DNA of 63,668 nt, filler included, from Klebsormidium nitens (lineage: Eukaryota > Plantae > Klebsormidiophyceae): the NCBI GenBank assembly GCA_000708835.1. It is 5 parts of 5 records of this genome, joined end to end, with 100 filler letters (N's around TTAATTAATTAA, not from the genome) between each part and the next. Parts side by side here need not be neighbours in the genome. Positions count along the whole stretch, not along the records: positions 39,707 to 46,396 come from DF238411.1; 4 more parts are not named here. The stretch is one strand, 5' to 3'. This document shows positions 7,976-47,850 of the stretch, piece after piece. Positions within the stretch are counted from its first letter, which is position 1, and each line of letters starts with the position of its first letter. The translations under genes were made by a program, and so were the position numbers. The notes under the pieces were generated by a model, which saw nothing but the letters and a program-made list of their open reading frames with translations, was not told the origin of the DNA and made no database searches.

Positions 7976-8173
7976 CTATTGCCACGAAGTGATTCTATCT
8001 AGGTGGTTCTCTAGTTCATCAATACTGGTCAGAACTTGCTTCATCTTGCTCGGGCTGTCGCGCAGAAGAACCCGCATTCGGCATCGAAGCTGTTCAAACG
8101 CTTCTCGTGGGTCGCCAGTGATGCTAACATCAGGATCCGAGGTGTCATGTTCGTATGGATAGTCGTACTCCAT
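7976..8173 (-). CDS. Small hypothetical protein
   Basis: 65-aa ATG-started ORF with acidic N-terminus and amphipathic helices, co-directional with neighbours. Confidence 0.4.
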   Translation of the reverse strand: MEYDYPYEHDTSDPDVSITGDPREAFEQLRCRMRVLLRDSPSKMKQVLTSIDELENHLDRITSWQ

Positions 8174-8327
8174 TTTCGTAACTTGTCACTTAGCTAGATT
8201 TTTTTTGTGGTAAAATTCGTCGCGGTGAAGGCTTAAAATCGCAATACAACACAAACTGTACGAAAGATGTACCACGCACACATGTCCGATTACCATATAT
8301 TTTCGTGGTGTCGTAGTATGACCATTC

Positions 8328-10058
8328 ATGCATCAGCCGTCGTCGTGGAAGAAACCTGCCAACTGGCTGCAAACTCTATCAGTCCTGATAGCTTACTATA
8401 GTCTGGCACAACTCAGTAGGCTTCTCGTCCAAAAAGACACACACTCCGTCCCCGTTTGGGCTCCATCTGCGATCGGACTGGCAGCGGCCCTACGTTTTGG
8501 CCGTATACAAGCTGCAGGAGGTGTCTTCACGGGTTCCATATTGCATTTAACCGTCATGTTTTACACGTCCAAACGATATCGCCATCCTAAATTCCTCGCG
8601 ATCGCTCCTGTGATCGGCCTCATCAATGGCTTGGAAGCGACCATATCCTGTACATTAGTCCGCCTGCTGAGTGGACGCACTAAGAACTGGTTCGACACGA
8701 GAAATAGTGCATTCGCATTCTTCGCGGCGATGCCCATCGCCCCTCTGATATCGGGATACAGCATCGCTATCCTCTTGGTCGCAGTTCGCATCAGCAACGC
8801 GAAGCAAATAGGGCTCTATGGTGCGGCTCTATTCTTAGGACGTCTCGGTGCCACGTGCGCTTTAGTCCCGGCACTCACTCAACCTTGGACTGGAATGGAC
8901 AGACGTCGGATCGTCTCATTGAGTGCGGTCTACCTGGCTATCGTCATCGTATTCTCTTTCGTCTTTCTGAATAGATATGGGCTGGTCGAGAGCGAACAAC
9001 TCCGACCCCTCGTCTTTCCCGCATTCGGGCTCGTTCTCTTCGTCGCCTCTACCATCAAGGACATACGCGGCGTCACTGCAGCAATCTTGCTGGCAATGAG
9101 CTTGGTGATTGTAGGAAGTTCTAACGGAAAGGGTCCGTTCAGTGGCAGTGTTCACTCTCCTTTCTTTTGGCTCGTGCTGGAACAGAGCTTCATATGCGTC
9201 GTGAGCACTGCGAGTATATGCATGGCAGCTTTAGTCTGCGAACAGGATGCCACCAACTTTACGGTCGCGACTTTGAACAAGCAACTTCAGGCACATCTCC
9301 ACTACCGCACCCGTGAGTCCGCGTCTGCGATGGACCGCGCGGAGGACACTGGCCGCCACAAACTCAGTTTCATACGCCGCATAAAAGAAGAGGTGCGGGC
9401 ACCGCTAGCAGCCTTGAGCTTTTCAGGAGAGGGAAGTATTCCGAACGACCGGGAGAGCATCGAAGTTCTCGTCTCTAGATTAGACGATCTCATTGAAGTC
9501 GGAGTCGCTGAGACCGGACGGATGTCTATCGACGAGTACGAGTTCGACCCCATCGAGAATTTCCGCCTCGCTTTGAGTCAGTCACGACCGGACCTCATAA
9601 ATTGCGCAACCTGGAATACGACGGACGATGTTCCGAGGAAGGTGTATGGAGATGCGGTAAAACTCCGCCGCTGTCTCATGGAGATGATCATGGATACTTG
9701 TTTCAGGGCTGGAAAAGTGGACGCCTTGGACCTCAAGGTCAGAGTGGTCCCCTTGGAGGGCAGTTCATTCGGTTCCGATCATCCAAAACGTCAGATTCAA
9801 ATTCGATTTAAAGTCTACGCGGCAGCTCCTTCGAAAGCGGTCGATTGGAAGAGTGTCATTCCAGAAGAAGATACACTTTCAAACGATCGTCCACTAGCTC
9901 TTTGTGAGGAATTGGGAGGCAGCCTGTACCGCTCATTAGACGGACGAGGGACGAGACTCGACATGCGATTTCGACGTATGTTGTCAGACACGGCGGCTGA
10001 AGATCCTCGACACCTGCCGGCAATCACAGAAGGAGCGTTCAGCATAGAGAGTGCGTGA
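8328..10058 (+). CDS. MASE1 membrane sensor fused to degenerate HisKA/HATPase (pseudo-histidine kinase)
   Basis: N-half: multiple TM segments with MASE1-like PVWAPSAIGLAAAL, GLINGLEAT and GKGPF. C-half aligns with hybrid-HK consensus (LNKQLQ..RTRE, KLSFIRRIKEEVRAPL, ETGRMSIDEYEFD, VPRKVYGDAVKLRRCL, EELGGSL..DGRGT) but H-box His, N-box Asn and G1/G2 boxes are lost. Confidence 0.8.
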   Translation: MHQPSSWKKPANWLQTLSVLIAYYSLAQLSRLLVQKDTHSVPVWAPSAIGLAAALRFGRIQAAGGVFTGSILHLTVMFYTSKRYRHPKFLAIAPVIGLINGLEATISCTLVRLLSGRTKNWFDTRNSAFAFFAAMPIAPLISGYSIAILLVAVRISNAKQIGLYGAALFLGRLGATCALVPALTQPWTGMDRRRIVSLSAVYLAIVIVFSFVFLNRYGLVESEQLRPLVFPAFGLVLFVASTIKDIRGVTAAILLAMSLVIVGSSNGKGPFSGSVHSPFFWLVLEQSFICVVSTASICMAALVCEQDATNFTVATLNKQLQAHLHYRTRESASAMDRAEDTGRHKLSFIRRIKEEVRAPLAALSFSGEGSIPNDRESIEVLVSRLDDLIEVGVAETGRMSIDEYEFDPIENFRLALSQSRPDLINCATWNTTDDVPRKVYGDAVKLRRCLMEMIMDTCFRAGKVDALDLKVRVVPLEGSSFGSDHPKRQIQIRFKVYAAAPSKAVDWKSVIPEEDTLSNDRPLALCEELGGSLYRSLDGRGTRLDMRFRRMLSDTAAEDPRHLPAITEGAFSIESA

Positions 10059-39606: not shown

Positions 39607-39751
39607 NNNNNNNNNNNNNNNNNNNNNNNNNNNNNNNNNNNNNNNNNNNNTTAATTAATTAANNNNNNNNNNNNNNNNNNNNNNNNNNNNNNNNNNNNNN
39701 NNNNNNTCATGCTACCATCTGCTGTAAGGATTTGCATAAAGATATGTACAC

Positions 39752-40237
39752 TCAATGCCACTCAGTGAGATCCTCATCAACGGTAGTACCGTAACGGCTC
39801 AATAAGTCAACCTTCATGCTCTTATAGCTTTGCCAACCAACGTAGCCTCCTTTGGCCCGTCGTTTCTCGAGAATCCTTTGCAACACAAGGTTCTGCATGG
39901 CGGCCTTTTCTCTCTCGTTCGAGGGAACCTCTTCAGCTCGCAGGCCTGCTGCTTCTGGATTACTGGCAATCTCAGAGACCTCTGCAGCAATCATACTCTC
40001 GACAGCTAGGCACGTCATGATCCGCTCCTTGCGTGCGGCCTCCATCGCCTCCCAGAGGGCCTCTGCCATCTCCAATGCAAGAAGCTGCTGTGGAGGGCTC
40101 AGGTCCTCTGTGGTCCGGAAGTCGAGGTCCATTCTGTAACCTACATGAGAAAGCAAGAAAAACTTGCTCATGCACGCGTCCGTGTTGGGAGCCATCCAGG
40201 GAAAAAGACATGGCAGTAAAGAGAAGCCGCTCGACAT
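39752..40237 (-). CDS. Hypothetical helical protein (probably last exon of a spliced gene), divergent from the WNK-REC gene
   Basis: Acceptor TTTCTCATGTAG near 40140, then DLDFRTTEDLSPPQQLLALEMAEALWEAME... to a stop at 39752. Confidence 0.45.
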   Translation of the reverse strand: MSSGFSLLPCLFPWMAPNTDACMSKFFLLSHVGYRMDLDFRTTEDLSPPQQLLALEMAEALWEAMEAARKERIMTCLAVESMIAAEVSEIASNPEAAGLRAEEVPSNEREKAAMQNLVLQRILEKRRAKGGYVGWQSYKSMKVDLLSRYGTTVDEDLTEWH

Positions 40238-40498
40238 GCCGTCCGGGCGGCCAGCTCGAGAACACGGAAGAGCTCTGAGGTGGCTTCGAGCTCCTTCCTC
40301 ACCATGTACAAGGGTGCGAAGGTTGCGAAGTGATTGCTATTGCAATTGCAAGAGATGCCGCCTTTTTTGTTCTGAAGCTCACTTGACGTAGTGTACGTGA
40401 GGCTCCGTCAAGGGCCGCAAGCTTCCCTCGGTCCTCCGTTCAGATCCGGAACTCGGGAGCCGAAAAAAAAGTGAGGGCATGACAGCACACCGAGAGGG

Positions 40499-41686
40499 AT
40501 GCAGAGGTACAGCAAAAGCGACCATATCCTCGGCTCATCCGAGTTTAAAACCTTCTACTCCGGTTTTGACCACAAGCAGGGTGTGGCTGTGGCCTGGTCT
40601 GTGATTGATCTGAAGTCAGGGGAATGCACTGACCAGCTGGTGCGGACGCTCCAGCTCATCCAGAGGGTCGAGCACGACCACATCGTGCGCATCCACGACT
40701 GGTTCTTGGACCCAGACTCGGGAAAGATGCACGTGGTCACTGACCTCTTTAGGCCTGGGAACCTGCGGGACCTGCTAAAGGCTGCTGGGAGGATCGATGA
40801 AATCGTGCTGAGGAGGTGGGGGTGCGACCTGCTGACTGCCATCTCCTTTGTCCACAGCCTCGACGGCCCTCTCCGGATCCGGAACCTGCGCATGGGGAAC
40901 GTGTTGGTGCATCAGGACGTTGGGGTCATCAAGCTGGATCTGCTGAGCGTCTCGTTCCTGTTCACATCCCACGGGTATGCCAGGGAGAGGGTAGAGGCGA
41001 TCAGGGTCATGTCCCCTGAATGTTTGCTCGGCCCAACCGATGAGAAGGTGGATATCTACGGATTTGGTATGGTCATGCTAGAGGCAGCCACCAGGCTCCA
41101 ACCGTACAAGGAGTGCAGCACGGTTGCGAGCCTCTATGACAAAGTGACCCACTTCCAGCCCCCGAAAGCTCTCGGTCAGGTACAGGACAAAGGCCTGCAG
41201 GACATCATAAAGAGGACGCTGCTGAGGGCGTCCGAGCGGCCCTCTGCGCACGACTTGCTCAACCTCCCCTACTTTCGTTTCGAGCCTAGCCTCTGGGGTA
41301 TGCATGTGGTGGTGATTGATGACGACCCAGTGAACCTCAGGATGTGCACCAGGCTTTTGGAAAAGGAGGGCGTCACCGTTGTCCCCTGTAACACCTTCAA
41401 CGAAGTGATCACCCTGCTGTCCACCCGGGCTTTTGCAGCTCTCATTACTGACATCGTCATGCCTAACATGGGCGGTTTCGAGATGAGCGCAAGTTTGCGG
41501 CAACTGAGGTACAACTCGCTGATGATTATTGGGATCAGTGCGCACAAGAGAGAAGACCTTGACGAGCGCATGGCAGAGAGTGGGATGGATGCCTTTGTGC
41601 AGAAGCCCTTTACATTCGAGAACCTGCGGATTGCTTTCACAAAGGCCCGCATGAGGAGAACTTCGAGCGCAAGAGACAATTGCTGA
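40499..41686 (+). CDS. WNK-like pseudokinase fused to a C-terminal response-regulator receiver domain (intronless)
   Basis: WNK N-lobe RYSK...LGSSEFKTFYSGFD..QGVAVAWS, with HRDLK degenerated to IRNLR, DLG to DLL and APE to SPE. Receiver has VIDDDPVN, ITDIVMP (phospho-Asp), ISAH and QKPF intact. Confidence 0.88.
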   Translation: MQRYSKSDHILGSSEFKTFYSGFDHKQGVAVAWSVIDLKSGECTDQLVRTLQLIQRVEHDHIVRIHDWFLDPDSGKMHVVTDLFRPGNLRDLLKAAGRIDEIVLRRWGCDLLTAISFVHSLDGPLRIRNLRMGNVLVHQDVGVIKLDLLSVSFLFTSHGYARERVEAIRVMSPECLLGPTDEKVDIYGFGMVMLEAATRLQPYKECSTVASLYDKVTHFQPPKALGQVQDKGLQDIIKRTLLRASERPSAHDLLNLPYFRFEPSLWGMHVVVIDDDPVNLRMCTRLLEKEGVTVVPCNTFNEVITLLSTRAFAALITDIVMPNMGGFEMSASLRQLRYNSLMIIGISAHKREDLDERMAESGMDAFVQKPFTFENLRIAFTKARMRRTSSARDNC

Positions 41687-41699
41687 GTCTCGGAAGGTA

Positions 41700-44600
41700 G
41701 ATTATGTACTGTACTATATTGCATCTTTTTCGGGTATGGCCTTACATACATACATATCGGCAATTGGAAACCAAAGGGGAAACTCTGTACTGCTAATCTG
41801 TTATATTCTCTTCTCCAAAAAGTAGGTTACAATATTGCATCTTTTTCAGGTATGGCCTTACATACATAGATATCACCAATTGGAAACCAAAGGGAAAACT
41901 CTGTACTGNNNNNNNNNNNNNNNNNNNNNNNNNNNNNNNNNNNNNNNNNNNNNNNNNNNNNNNNNNNNNNNNNNNNNNNNNNNNNNNNNNNNNNNNNNNN
42001 NNNNNNNNNNNNNNNNNNNNNNNNNNNNNNNNNNNNNNNNNNNNNNNNNNNNNNNNNNNNNNNNNNNNNNNNNNNNNNNNNNNNNNNNNNNNNNNNNNNN
42101 NNNNNNNNNNNNNNNNNNNNNNNNNNNNNNNNNNNNNNNNNNNNNNNNNNNNNNNNNNNNNNNNNNNNNNNNNNNNNNNNNNNNNNNNNNNNNNNNNNNN
42201 NNNNNNNNNNNNNNNNNNNNNNNNNNNNNNNNNNNNNNNNNNNNNNNNNNNNNNNNNNNNNNNNNNNNNNNNNNNNNNNNNNNNNNNNNNNNNNNNNNNN
42301 NNNNNNNNNNNNNNNNNNNNNNNNNNNNNNNNNNNNNNNNNNNNNNNNNNNNNNNNNNNNNNNNNNNNNNNNNNNNNNNNNNNNATGGCCTTACATACAT
42401 ACATATCACCAATTGGAAACCAAAGGGGAAACTCTGTACTGCTAATCTGTTATAATTCCTTCCCTGGAGAAGAAAGAAATTATAACAGATTGTAGTATGA
42501 AAGTCTTGGACCCTCGGCCGATTTGCTGATATGTATGTATGTAAGGGTCCCCCCTATCAAACACAGGGAAAAGAGAGAGGGATGGACGACTCACCTGCTC
42601 GCTCCCACCCCCTTTTGACTTTGCCCTAAGCCCCTGATAGCTGCCCGCTCCTCCCTCGCTCTCCTTGTTCCTAAGCCCCTCGTCGAACCCGTTGCTCGCA
42701 CTTCTTTCTTGGCATGCCTGCCTCTTGGCTCTGCGCAGATGCACGGGTCGCGCAGGTGTTCTGGACCCCCTCGTATAACAAAGGATTCGAACCTCAGAAC
42801 TTGAAAGTTCGTCACCATGCATGTGTTTGCACAAGTCTTCCGTCATCTACAACACCCAACCAGCATCTTGCAGGGTGTGGCCTTACATACATACATATCG
42901 GCGATTGGGAACCAAAAAGAAAACTCTGTACTACTAATCTGTTATATTCTCTTCTCCAAAAAGTCGATTACAATATTGCATCTCTTTCAGGTATTGGCCT
43001 TACATACATACATATCGGCACTTGGAAACCAAAGGTAAAACTCTGTACTGTTAATCTGTTATAATTCCTTCCCTGGAGAAGAAAGAAAAAATAACAGATT
43101 GTAGTATGATAGTCTTGGACACCCGGCCGGTTTGCTGATATGTATGTATCTAAGGGTCCTCCCTATCAAACATAGGGAAAAGAGGGTGGGATGGGTGACT
43201 CACCTGTCTCGCCCTTTTGAGCTGCCACCCGCTCCTGCTGGTCCGCCCTTCTGAGCAGGTCCCTCTCTCCCTAAGCCCCTGATGGAAGGTCGCCACCCGC
43301 TGCTGCTTGTCTGCCCTTATGAGCAGGTTCTTGTGTCCCTAAGCCGTTTGGCAGGTCACCAGCCGCTCTTGCTGGTCCGCTACTCTGAGCAGGTGCTTCC
43401 TTTTCAGTGGGATCGGCCGAAGCGTTCTCTGCCAACCGTGCAGCTCCTGTTGAGGCGCCAACAACGCTCGAAAGGGCAGGCGATTGGAGCGTCCGGAATG
43501 GTTGTCTTCGGCGCGTTCTGGAGAGCGACAGGGTGTGGGTGAGACTTTCCTAAGGCTGGAAGAATGAGAATTCGTGGGGCCTTCTTGAGCTTAAATATCA
43601 AACCCTGGATGGCACGCAGGGACGGGTTGGTGGCAAAGGCTGGCTTACCTCCTGCCAAAAGACGCCAAAAAATGCAAGAGCAAGCCATCTTCAAGGTGGT
43701 AAAACCATGCACTCACAAGTTTCTTGAATCTGGGGAGGCTCACCTACCATGCTGGGTGAGTGTTTACAAGTGAGCAAGTGGGCCGCGCACAGGGACAGAG
43801 GCTTGATCGTCGACTTGAAGGTAGTAACAGAAGAAGTACGGGCGTCCTGTTTTTTCGTGCGCTTCCTAAGTTACGCGCGATGCAATAAAGTCGAGAACGA
43901 AAGACTATGCGTGCAACTTGGGGAGACTATCCTTTCGGTACTCGACATATAATGTGGCTGACCGCCGACGCCATCGTGTATCACAGCGCCAGCGCTGCGT
44001 TCCACGAGTTTTCCAACTTTTACACTTCGAACCTGCAGTACCACCATGTTGAGGGCTTTTTCCAGGCAGCCAAGTTCCAGGGCACCGACCCAGAGTACTT
44101 TGAGCGAGTGCGTCTCACCAGCTGGCCGCGATCCGCGAAAGCGCTCGGGCGGCGCCGTCGCATGACGGCAGAACAGCTCAAGGCCTGGGAAGCACGCAAG
44201 GACGGCGTGATGGCAACAGTGCTGCGCGCCAAGTTTGAGCAACACCCGCAGCTGCGGGAGCTGCTCTTATCCGACCGGCGGCAGTCCACTGGTAGAGAAG
44301 CCGGCACGCGGCGATAGGTACTGGGGGTGCGGCGCGAAGGGAGATGGGCGGCCAGAGGAAAGCCAGTTAACTCTGGTATTGTTGCCATTTTCTGCTCTCT
44401 TTCTTTCCCCCGTTACGTTACAGGGGCGACAATTTGGGCGAAAATGGTGATAAGTCCCAGTTCAATAACTTTGCTTGGAGCATCTTTCAGCAACAACTAA
44501 TTGGTATATAGCAGTCAGTCCAGAGAGATGAAATTTCAAAGTCCCCGGCATGCTCTGCTCAGATACACGGATAACAAGCAAAATTCCAAAGGTCCTGTCA

Positions 44601-46320
44601 GAATTGAAAAGCAGACTTAGGGGATGGGCGACTCACCTGCTCGCTCCCGCCCCCTTTGACTTGCCCTAAGTCCCTGGTAGCTGCCCGCTGCCCCCCACTC
44701 CTTCGGGCCGCTCTCCTTGTTCCTAAGCCCCTGGTCGAACCCGTTGCTCGCACTTCTTTCTTGGCATGGCCTGCCCTCCGGGTCGTGCAGGTGTTCTGGG
44801 CCCCTTCCTATACCAAAGAATTCGAACCCCGAACTCAAAAGTTCGTCACCATGCGTGTACTTGCACAAGTCTGCAGTCAACTACAACACCCAACCAACAT
44901 CGTGCAAGGGATGGCCTTACATACATACATATCGGCTATTGGAAACCAAAGGGAAAACTCTGTACTACTAATCTGTTATATTCTCTTCTCCAAAAAGTCA
45001 ATTACAACATTGCATCTTTTTCAGGTATGGCCTTACATACATACATATCGGCAATTGGAAACCAAAAAGAAAACTCTGTACTANNNNNNNNNNNNNNNNN
45101 NNNNNNNNNNNNNNNNNNNNNNNNNNNNNNNNNNNNNNNNNNNNNNNNNNNNNNNNNNNNNNNNNNNNNNNNNNNNNNNNNNNNNNNNNNNNNNNNNNNN
45201 NNNNNNNNNNNNNNNNNNNNNNNNNNNNNNNNNNNNNNNNNNNNNNNNNNNNNNNNNNNNNNNNNNNNNNNNNNNNNNNNNNNNNNNNNNNNNNNNNNNN
45301 NNNNNNNNNNNNNNNNNNNNNNNNNNNNNNNNNNNNNNNNNNNNNNNNNNNNNNNNNNNNNNNNNNNNNNNNNNNNNNNNNNNNNNNNNNNNNNNNNNNN
45401 NNNNNNNNNNNNNNNNNNNNNNNNNNNNNNNNNNNNNNNNNNNNNNNNNNNNNNNNNNNNNNNNNNNNNNNNNNNNNNNNNNNNNNNNNNNNNNNNNNNN
45501 NNNNNNNNNNNNNNNNNNNNNNNNNNNNNNNNNNNNNNNNNNNNNNNNNNNNNNNNNNNNNNNNNNNNNNNNNNNNNNNNNNNNNNNNNNNNNNNNNNNN
45601 NNNNNNNATGGCCTTACATACATACATATCGGCAATTGAAAAACAAAGGGAAAACTCTGTACTGTTAATCTGTTATAATTCCTTCCCTGGAGAAGAAAGA
45701 AAATATAACAGATTGTAGTATGAAAGTCTTGGACCCCCAGCCGGTTTGCTGATATGTATGTATCTAAAGGTCCTCCTTGTGAATCATAGGGCAAAGAGGG
45801 TGGGATGGGTGACTCACCTGCTCGCCCGGCTGCCTTACTACGTGCAGGTCCCTTCCTTCCTAAGCCCCTGATGAAAGGTCTCCACCTGCTCCTGCTTGCG
45901 CTGGCGGGTCACCAGCCGCTCTTGTTGGTCCGGCCCCCTGAGATCAGCTAGAGCACCGCGTAGTCCTTGTTGAGGCGCCACGCTCGAATGGAAGTCTCTG
46001 AGGCGCGTTCTGGGGGGCGGCGAGATGTTGCAGCGGGTGAGGTTTCCTGAGGACGAGAAATGAGAACTATTGGGGCATTCTGAGCTTATATATCAAAACC
46101 TGAATGGCGTGCACCGGGGGCGGGTGCGCGGCAAGGGCTAGCTACCTGCTGCCAAAATACGCCAATGAATGCACTTGCAAGTCAATCAAACATACAGAAA
46201 AGAGGGTGGGATGGGTGACTTGCCTGCCTCGCCCGTCCTTCTTAGCACATCACTCTACCCGCTCCTTGCTGGTCCGCCCTTTTGAGCAGGTCCCTCTCTC
46301 CCTAAACCGCTAGTTCTAAG
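41700..46320. repeat. Complex nested repeat: ~118-bp units within larger tandem exon/intron-like duplications
   Basis: GGCCTTACATACATACATATCGGCAATTGGAAACCAAAG units in three blocks (41.7-42.5, 42.9-43.2, 44.9-45.8 kb). Minus-strand donor-like CAG/GTGAGTC recurs near 42590, 43200, 44630 and 45810. Confidence 0.8.
43952..44350 (+). pseudogene. NADAR/YbiA-family gene, frameshifted and 3'-truncated
   Basis: FSNFY, YHHVEGFFQAAKF, PRSAKALGR, W...KDGVM..VLRAKFEQHPQLRELLLS. A +1 nt near 44273 shifts to TGGSPLVE...DRYWGCG; the terminal N.LG..LM motif is absent. Confidence 0.85.
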
Positions 46321-47850
46321 CTGAAATTCGTGAAGCTTCATCAACTTCAGCTCCTAAGCCCAGCACCTATATCGTCAAGTTGCACGGCGAGATGCCNNNN
46401 NNNNNNNNNNNNNNNNNNNNNNNNNNNNNNNNNNNNNNNNTTAATTAATTAANNNNNNNNNNNNNNNNNNNNNNNNNNNNNNNNNNNNNNNNNNNNTCCC
46501 GCCCACCTACCTTACTCAAGAAAGAATACTGACAACTGAGTGAGTATACCCGTGGATACCTATTCCAAGCAGCCAGGCCTGCCTAACAACATGGCTGTGT
46601 CAAGCAATATCAGGGATATAATGACAAATACTGTTCTCCTTCCTCATTTGCCTACCTAATCCCACCTTCTCGCCTCTTTTCCGCCCTTTGAAAGAAACCA
46701 TCTCCCCTGTCCAGGCTGGCGGGTTTGGCGGCCATTGTCTAGGTGAACACTTCCCTCCCTTGCCGGCTTGCCAGGCTCCCTCCTTCCTCTCTCCTGCACG
46801 GCGCACTCCTTGTAGGTAAGTTTGTTCACGGCATCCGATTGTAGGTAATATCTTGAAGAGGACTCCCAGATCATTCCATGTACCGTTCGATGGAACCCGA
46901 TCCACGGCATTCAAAGCCCCACTCTTATACAAGATCTTTTGCAATTCAAGTTTTGTGCAGGAGTGGGTTTTTCCGCGCGACGCGTGGCATACTAATAGAT
47001 TGGAATAATTTGGAAAGTGCGCTTTTCCTCTCCGGTTACAAAAAGTCGCCAACTTTGGACTCTGGAGGCTGGCCTTGCCATAAATGATGATTCGGCCCGG
47101 TTCGGGGCCCGAGCCCGGGGCAATCAGATCCGAGATCAGATGATTCTGAACACCTGCAACGATGTCTGATCGGATTTGATTGGGGCTCGGGGGACCGGGC
47201 CGGGGAAATATGATCATTGGTACCGTACATCTATGCCCCGTGAAAATGGGGATCTGGATTCCAGGAGTACAGTAGGTACGTCATGACTCCGCCTGACTCA
47301 TGAGTCATGCCTCACGTGACGTTGGATACTGCAGTGGCAAGAGTGACGTCTGGCCGCCGGCGCCTGCTCTGCATGCCATATGGCAAGTCGGCACTGCATT
47401 CCGCATGATCCGTGCAGTGACTGTGCAGCAGTGGAACTTGAAGTTGGAACTTGGAAGTTGGAAGTCGAAGAGCAGCATTGCGTCCTGTCGTGAACCGTGA
47501 GTTGAAGTCCACCTTCTTGAGCGACGATACTCTTCTTCGACTCACAAAGGGGAATGCTGTGTGTGAGGGCTGCAGAGCCGGCGTGCTCCCCCCTACGACT
47601 CCAAATAGTTTACGACGGCAACACTTTCAAGCACCATCCCTTTCTTTGGCGCACCACTCGAAATCACTATCAAAACGCCACAAGCAGAGCTCCTGTACGC
47701 GCAGTTGAACCAGCAACCCTTTTCGCGGGGCCGCATTGTCCTGTGCTTGGCCAGTCCTTTTGCAATAGCGTGAGAAATTTTCCACGGCCCCGCCGTCTTG
47801 TCCGCATAGCGACACCATTGCCGCCAGCTGTCGTTTGCACGGGTGCCCAC

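Follow-up and report, generated by a model that had tools for sequence, protein, structure and literature searches.

The window analysed here is a stretch of 63,668 nucleotides from the streptophyte alga Klebsormidium nitens (assembly GCA_000708835.1), joined from five parts of five records. One of these parts (positions 39,707–46,396) is the whole of scaffold DF238411.1, 6,690 bp long, and carries on its plus strand, at 40,499–41,686, an intact single-exon open reading frame (ORF) of 395 amino acids plus stop that fuses a WNK-like pseudokinase to a receiver domain. We consider it rather probable that this ORF belongs to a small gene family of phycodnavirus-like giant viruses (Nucleocytoviricota) associated with Klebsormidium-type algae, that the copy in the window is endogenised and silent, and that its product is a response-regulator-type switch with a dead WNK output. 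Taken on its own, the copy most likely lies in viral DNA endogenised in the K. nitens genome, and it is probably silent there. Pseudokinases and receiver domains are each well known; here the two are joined in giant-virus DNA tied to an alga closely related to land plants. The domain pair is already named in NCBI annotation, which labels the K. nitens proteins ‘cheY-homologous receiver domain containing Ser/Thr protein kinase’. For the WNK affinity, the pseudokinase state and the viral context, no description was found in open-access papers.

The pseudokinase–receiver fusion and its relatives

Residues 1–262 (40,499–41,284, plus strand) form a WNK-derived pseudokinase domain, as judged from Pfam, a sequence search of the PDB, alignments and Foldseek. 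Pfam places Pkinase on residues 8–259 (E 5e-22, far over the curated cut-off), and in a phmmer search of the PDB the nearest kinases are WNK3 and WNK1 (E 7e-36 to 6e-32), whereas the next family, MAP3K2, reaches only 1e-15. By sequence the domain is closest to WNKs, human WNK1 and WNK3 and plant WNKs among them (E about 1e-36, 29–35% identity, in plants, green algae and protists), and the best kinase-only matches bear OSR1_C or CCTL2_WNK domains, or WNK names. An AlphaFold2 (AF2) model, built with an input alignment of 36 sequences, predicts a bilobal kinase fold with a mean predicted local distance difference test score (pLDDT) of 86.2 and a predicted template modelling score of 0.74; a short linker near residues 261–268 is of lower confidence. 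Compared with the PDB by Foldseek, this model again appears nearest to WNKs, with template modelling scores of 0.8–0.84 on the target: the best 30 matches are all WNK1 or WNK3, followed by MEK1, MEKK2 and Nek2. This check is only partly independent, since WNKs were included in the AF2 input alignment.

At the motif level the domain combines the hallmarks of a WNK with the loss of the catalytic core. The WNK-type lysine of the F-K-T motif in β2 is kept as Lys17 and is invariant in all family members, while β3 reads A-W-S (Ser34), aligned with A-W-C in WNKs, and has no lysine, as in WNKs. The asparagine of the catalytic loop (Asn134) and the S/A-P-E motif are retained as well. Unlike in WNKs, the Gly-loop is degraded to G-S-S-E-F-K-T instead of GxGxFKT, with the second glycine lost; the αC glutamate is replaced by Thr50, the HRD motif has become I-R-N with Asn129 in place of its aspartate, the catalytic-loop lysine is changed to Arg131, and the DLG region reads K-L-D-L-L-S with Leu148 in the place of the aspartate. 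Glu163, invariant in the family, stands at the aligned activation-loop serine of WNKs, which we take to be the main one, Ser382 of WNK1. The αC glutamate and the HRD and DLG aspartates are absent here and in every family member. With three of the four catalytic residues lost and the WNK-type lysine kept, the alignments show a domain that is predicted to be catalytically dead. An earlier interpretation of the same DNA, the sequence-only reading, had pointed to the retained lysine, the HRD substitution and the degraded Gly-loop, all of which are borne out; the domain appears more degraded than the HRD change alone implied. Downstream of the kinase Pfam finds no OSR1_C or CCT-like domain, giving Pkinase and Response_reg only, whereas the bona fide WNKs P0031 and P0097 do have OSR1_C. 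In further distinction from WNKs, a receiver takes the place of that domain, and the protein is only 395 residues long, intronless and set in a viral context.

The receiver covers residues 270–378 (41,306–41,632, plus strand), where the match to Pfam Response_reg reaches 75.6 bits, the cut-off being 30.2 (E 4e-21). D274/D275, the phospho-acceptor D318, S347, F366 and K369 are all present, as the sequence-only reading had stated; they are invariant or nearly so across the family and are retained in its most distant member, P0028. In the AF2 model residues 269–389 form five strand-helix units in a (βα)5 fold with pLDDT mostly 87–91, and a conserved C-terminal helix and an R-T-S-S tail lead from the receiver to the stop codon. 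The nearest solved receivers are those of hybrid histidine kinases, namely RcsC (8e-15), AHK4 (4e-11), SLN1, AHK5 and RpfC. Conserved residues and predicted fold together show a fully canonical receiver that is predicted to be switch-competent. It shares its canonical chemistry and (βα)5 fold with the receivers of RcsC, AHK4/CRE1 and SLN1, which trade phosphate with histidine-phosphotransfer (HPt) proteins. In contrast to response regulators with other non-DNA-binding outputs, the receiver lies C-terminal to its presumed output, a WNK-type pseudokinase. The central claim of the sequence-only reading, the union of a WNK-type pseudokinase with a fully canonical receiver, is thus supported by Pfam, the PDB sequence search, Foldseek and the motif alignments alike.

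A word-based search retrieved 11 further proteins of the same architecture with 56–91% identity, two of them from K. nitens and the rest from JGI, ENA and Logan assemblies, which argues that the pairing of the domains is not a chance juxtaposition. An exhaustive phmmer search against 1.84 billion representative proteins added one distant member, P0028 (411 residues, 38% identity, both domains). In total about 12 relatives with 38–91% identity are known, all with the same architecture, the same dead motifs and a threonine or serine at the αC position. Among the divergent members the HRD motif is one residue shorter or reads L-S-V, and DLG reads D-L-L or D-I-L. In the representative search both domains are covered solely by P0010, P0028 and two fragments, and the following 146 matches are kinase-only WNKs. 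Any other WNK-receiver fusion should outrank those kinase-only matches and none did, so beyond this small family none turned up among the 1.84 billion representatives. The architecture is therefore not common, though NCBI does name its K. nitens members as receiver plus kinase, and the remark of the sequence-only reading that it knew of no described WNK-receiver fusion agrees with this search.

All copies of the family share the design of a single uninterrupted ORF without genuine introns, in line with the intronless gene proposed earlier. The ORF in the window is identical to the NCBI protein P0001 across 93% of its length. The P0001 model itself, however, has 507 residues and spans 40,499–44,317: its splice crosses an N gap to reach an ORF at 43,282–43,542 and a NADAR ORF, and drops the C-terminus common to the family (K-P-F-T-F ... 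R-T-S-S). Because a family-conserved C-terminus is exchanged for ORFs beyond the gap, including NADAR, the 507-residue model is a chimera and the plain 395-residue ORF is the gene. The K. nitens assembly contains three copies of the fusion, two with an intact reading frame and one pseudogene. Other introns annotated in the family can likewise be ruled out as real: that of the paralogue P0002 (locus L001) is an assembly gap of 463 N, and that of P0007 (locus L007 on DF237577.1) bridges a frameshift and an in-frame stop. It thereby masks the third K. nitens copy (L007 9,980–11,172) as a gene, although the frame is lost after ‘...VVTD’ and meets the stop. In practical terms, a chimeric K. nitens gene model is corrected and three K. 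nitens scaffolds are flagged as viral-derived.

Pairwise comparisons by the method of Nei and Gojobori (NG86) give a ratio of non-synonymous to synonymous substitution rates (dN/dS) of 0.11–0.17 against the K. nitens paralogue (dS 0.30–0.46) and of 0.11 against the metagenomic copy L002 (dS 0.99), the range of 0.11–0.17 referring to non-saturated pairs only. The low values hold in the kinase as well as in the receiver, and both domains are under purifying selection. The sequence-only reading had named a silent locus with a dN/dS near 1 as grounds for rejecting its claim; the locus does look silent, as no transcript contigs were found, and the ratio is not 1 but about 0.1–0.17. The most economical reading is that the window copy is a silent, relatively young viral insert, and in that case the low dN/dS mostly records selection in the virus lineage.

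The sequence-only reading had looked to separate trees for each domain. In a kinase-domain tree of 87 rows (IQ-TREE quick search, support from the Shimodaira–Hasegawa-like approximate likelihood ratio test, SH-aLRT) the fusion family forms one clade with a support of 100 on a very long stem (branch 2.09), and this clade groups with WNK-like kinases from viral contexts with a support of 85, a sister placement that we treat as tentative. The best kinase-only match is the cluster of P0030 and P0176, a protein of 313 residues with the JGI name WNK, intact HRD and DLG motifs and A-W-S in β3. No donor lineage could be named for the kinase domain, as named WNKs from angiosperms, chlorophytes, metamonads and other protists all show 32–35% identity.

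Giant-virus gene context

The relatives of the fusion reveal where the gene resides. P0008, with 68% identity, sits on a 93-kb metagenome contig (L008/L010) whose genes lack introns and stand close together. Up to about 13 kb from the fusion, this contig encodes a Pox_A32 packaging ATPase (34 bits), Capsid_N (31 bits) and an EsV_1_7_cys protein (98 bits), together with RNase III, dUTPase, a cyclin, a RING protein, DUF5759, DUF5764 and DNA polymerase B. The distant P0028 lies on a 33.6-kb contig (L012) with a chlorovirus-type P11_C minor capsid protein and a TFIIB with an A2L zinc ribbon; Erv1/Alr is encoded directly upstream, and SET, cyclin, dUTPase and YqaJ genes are present as well. A third contig (L013) carries P0176 along with an mRNA triphosphatase (mRNA_triPase), TFIIB, a DNA methylase, a RING protein, a second WNK-like kinase and a separate receiver protein. 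Its two free-standing WNK-like kinases (890–1,810 and 8,001–8,942) have intact HRD and DLG motifs and a WNK-type β3 (A-W-C or A-W-S). The separate receiver protein is not an obvious donor of the receiver domain, since it is not significantly similar to that of the fusion. Viral hallmark genes thus accompany relatives on L008/L010, L012 and L013, and a giant-virus gene context is shown for two members sharing only 38% identity.

The K. nitens copies connect to these contigs by synteny. DF237577.1 is collinear with metagenome contigs over more than 7 kb, with a CAP gene, two ORFs, Methyltransf_24, the small ORF found beside the fusion and the fusion itself in the same order; the K. nitens paralogue scaffolds measure 42–50 kb and also hold LRR, SNF2 and Usp genes. 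The viral status of the window scaffold rests on this synteny with relatives, because hallmark genes are absent from the scaffold itself. In agreement with this, published work describes genes for a DNA polymerase, capsid, ATPase and VLTF3 of Phycodnaviridae-like type both in the K. flaccidum/nitens assembly and in the transcriptomes of Entransia, Interfilum and K. subtile (PMC5294986). The same survey of DNA from nucleocytoplasmic large DNA viruses (NCLDV) integrated in eukaryotes examined the genes around NCLDV core genes on K. flaccidum contigs (PMC5294986).

From the single exon the sequence-only reading had derived three possible origins: retroposition, capture by a transposable element, or a viral or horizontal source. 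The last is strongly supported by the gene context. Retroposition and capture were rejected because neighbouring genes are co-conserved with the ORF, namely a small ORF upstream, along with a downstream repeat in the closer loci, and because there is no poly(A) tract 3′ of the stop; an intron-bearing parent was not found either. As a further observation, the viral-type contig at L008 8,971–11,722 encodes a member of the CAP/PR-1 family and a GH9 cellulase of full length (473 bits); in a virus infecting a streptophyte alga with a cell wall, these could plausibly act on the wall or in interaction with the host.

Proposed function and competing explanations

We propose that the fusion protein is probably a WNK scaffold or decoy gated by a phosphorelay. 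In this scheme Asp318 would be phosphorylated by an HPt protein or a hybrid histidine kinase of the host or the virus, and phosphorylation would alter partner binding by the dead WNK domain. The partner could be an active WNK-type kinase, viral or host, or its substrates, with the dead domain serving as allosteric partner or decoy. As an outcome, the virus would tune ion, osmotic or stress signalling of the host during infection or latency. If this mechanism holds, the family offers a compact 395-residue system for asking how a phosphorelay gates a pseudokinase scaffold, and it would hint at what the two-component genes of algal giant viruses, long unexplained, may do. A further step, which we put forward as possible but doubtful, is that giant viruses of streptophyte algae own a WNK kit of active WNK-like kinases and a receiver-gated pseudokinase that turns a host or viral His-Asp relay into WNK-type control of ion, osmotic or stress responses. 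With such a kit, viruses would be taking over host signalling in a new way, and response regulators would gain a kind of output not described before.

Two known systems help to place this proposal. NRBP1, a pseudokinase related to WNK, binds the WNK pathway and activates it (PMC12266122). As a catalytically dead WNK relative that works by binding, it serves as a functional model for the proposed mechanism; unlike the fusion, it is a metazoan host protein without a receiver and works with TSC22D adaptors. The likeness drawn here is functional, and NRBP1 is missing from the 60 PDB sequence matches listed, which WNK1 and WNK3 head. Similarly, phaeoviruses carry 3–9 histidine kinases of unknown function (PMC11890097). 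EsV-1, FsV-158, FirrV-1 and endogenous elements of brown algae (PMC11890097) resemble the present case in having two-component parts in phycodnavirus-like viruses that integrate into algae, and an EsV-1-7 cysteine-rich protein occurs on the 93-kb contig of P0008. In contrast to the phaeovirus proteins, which combine HisKA and HATPase, the fusion has a receiver only, set on a pseudoenzyme of Ser/Thr-kinase fold, and the hosts are brown algae on one side and a streptophyte alga on the other.

Several observations weigh against the viral switch favoured here. The 6.7-kb window scaffold itself contains no viral hallmark gene, and no host-virus junction is seen on it, so that integration into a K. 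nitens chromosome is not shown. No isolated virus is known to bear the gene, and a scan of IMG/VR with the family alignment gave one 45-residue receiver match and no true relative. On the 93-kb contig the DNA polymerase B gene (L010 12,280–17,521) is split into at least six collinear ORFs, with an interruption of about 730 bp that holds an antisense ankyrin-like ORF. Because the gene is broken, with largely the same breaks in a second assembly (L011), this contig is probably an endogenous, decaying element rather than a replicating virus, though its fusion gene is intact. For the proposed relay, about 40 kb of viral contig was examined, and neither a histidine kinase nor an HPt gene came to light there. 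The sister placement beside virus-context WNK-like kinases is tentative because long branches meet there. A complex prediction for the P0008 pseudokinase domain with the viral WNK-like P0176 lends the mechanism weak support, at a score of 0.36 against 0.00 for the best control (partner pLDDT at least 74, run agreement at least 54% of contacts). On this score 51 of 78 solved pairs and 2 of 108 mismatched ones attained the mark, but passes at or below 0.60 are more often wrong than right. The predicted complex could also reflect memorised WNK dimers, and it is not relied on.

Expression points in the same direction. Sampled sequence words were absent from all 24 same-species runs, and among the transcript contigs of four runs from four studies none lies on 39,707–41,720 with a likeness of at least 90%; since rare transcripts are lost from contigs, silence is not proven. 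RNA-seq had been named by the sequence-only reading, and in the contigs of these four runs the locus is uncovered. Two short Logan contigs (L014 and L015) were discarded as expression evidence, as they carry neighbouring ORFs and look like DNA. The earlier picture of an algal signalling gene is accordingly not supported: the 6.7-kb scaffold is rich in repeats, the NADAR gene next to the ORF is frameshifted, and no transcript contig from these runs covers the ORF.

An alternative that retains the algal setting would have the fusion born in the Klebsormidiophyceae, or long domesticated there, as an output of an algal phosphorelay that viruses later captured. The three copies in the K. nitens assembly, two with intact frames, fit this view, as does the dN/dS of 0.12–0.17 between two K. 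nitens copies. The G+C content at third codon positions of the window copy (40,499–41,683), at 0.75, exceeds that of the metagenome relatives (0.56–0.68) and may reflect amelioration towards host composition, and according to the K. flaccidum genome paper the host reportedly possesses two-component signalling. On the other hand, all copies are intronless once the supposed introns are recognised as an N gap or a frameshift bridge, one K. nitens copy is a pseudogene, the neighbours are of viral type and collinear with contigs carrying capsid, A32 and polB genes, and the 38%-identical member likewise sits in a giant-virus context. The missing transcript contigs also speak against a host family, and repressive methylation is reported to be enriched on K. 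nitens genes of viral origin (PMC12344493). We therefore regard a host origin as unlikely.

A scaffold from outside the algal genome, whether a co-assembled virus, an episome or DNA of a co-cultured organism, would be uninformative on K. nitens biology. It would account for a sequence of just 6,690 bp with repeat ends, two N gaps, no host junction and no RNA contigs. Yet one K. nitens copy is pseudogenised and the NADAR neighbour frameshifted, as decaying inserts would show, the paralogue scaffolds reach 42–50 kb with LRR, SNF2 and Usp genes, and genes near NCLDV cores on K. flaccidum contigs were covered in the survey of integrated NCLDV DNA (PMC5294986). Three diverged copies in one culture also fit repeated endogenisation better than a single contaminant, and we judge this explanation quite unlikely. 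More improbable still is an active kinase under receiver control that employs displaced residues, namely Lys17, Asn134 and Asp147, one before the position of the DLG aspartate. These three are invariant or nearly so in the family, the fold is predicted with confidence, and WNK itself, which at one time appeared to be without a catalytic lysine, is a precedent for relocated catalytic residues (PMC13686953). Against this, the αC glutamate and the HRD and DLG aspartates are all gone together, no catalytic base is conserved, the HRD region of divergent members having lost a residue or become L-S-V, and the second glycine of the Gly-loop is lost; the long stem branch of 2.09 fits a relaxation of catalytic constraint followed by a new function. 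A viral family with a dead WNK output remains the reading we prefer.

Neighbouring features on the window scaffold

Apart from the fusion gene the scaffold contains only a small ORF, repeats and a frameshifted NADAR gene. The small divergent ORF (39,752–40,132, minus strand) encodes 126 residues from the methionine of ‘MDLDF’ and adjoins the fusion in all closer relatives with 50–87% identity. It has no Pfam match, and with no H-x-x-K-G motif visible by eye in the alignment it was ruled out as an HPt protein; its absence beside the distant P0028 likewise speaks against an obligate partner of the fusion. Directly before the fusion (40,456–40,498, plus strand) an A-run followed by CATGACAGC, 15–35 nt ahead of the ATG and common to other loci, is possibly a promoter element. 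Only these proximal 45 bp or so are shared with other loci: a 315-bp insertion (40,141–40,455) in the divergent intergenic region, which is absent from the K. nitens paralogue scaffold with its flanks adjacent (L001 5,955/5,957), splits the short divergent promoter region. The 3′ end of this insertion resembles the 5′ end of the small ORF, so the insertion may have arisen by partial duplication.

Immediately downstream of the stop codon an array of a repeat of about 116 bp (41,712–41,908) runs into an N gap. The repeat recurs at 42,385–43,310, 44,907–45,083 and 45,608–46,229, and its arrays lie on the sides of both N gaps. It also comes after the fusion in L001 and L007 of K. nitens and in L002 and L006 of the metagenomes, so it belongs to the element and marks no host junction; on the 93-kb contig it does not follow the fusion. 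Further downstream, a gene with a Pfam NADAR domain (43,907–44,450, plus strand) is split by a frameshift near 44,290. Its first frame (43,907–44,317) covers profile positions 8–113 and the next (44,235–44,450) positions 114–138; the split points to a pseudogene or to an error in the assembly. Finally, a 68-bp tandem repeat at 43,225–43,399 (2.6 copies, 77% matches) overlaps the ORF at 43,282–43,542 that serves as an exon in the NCBI model.

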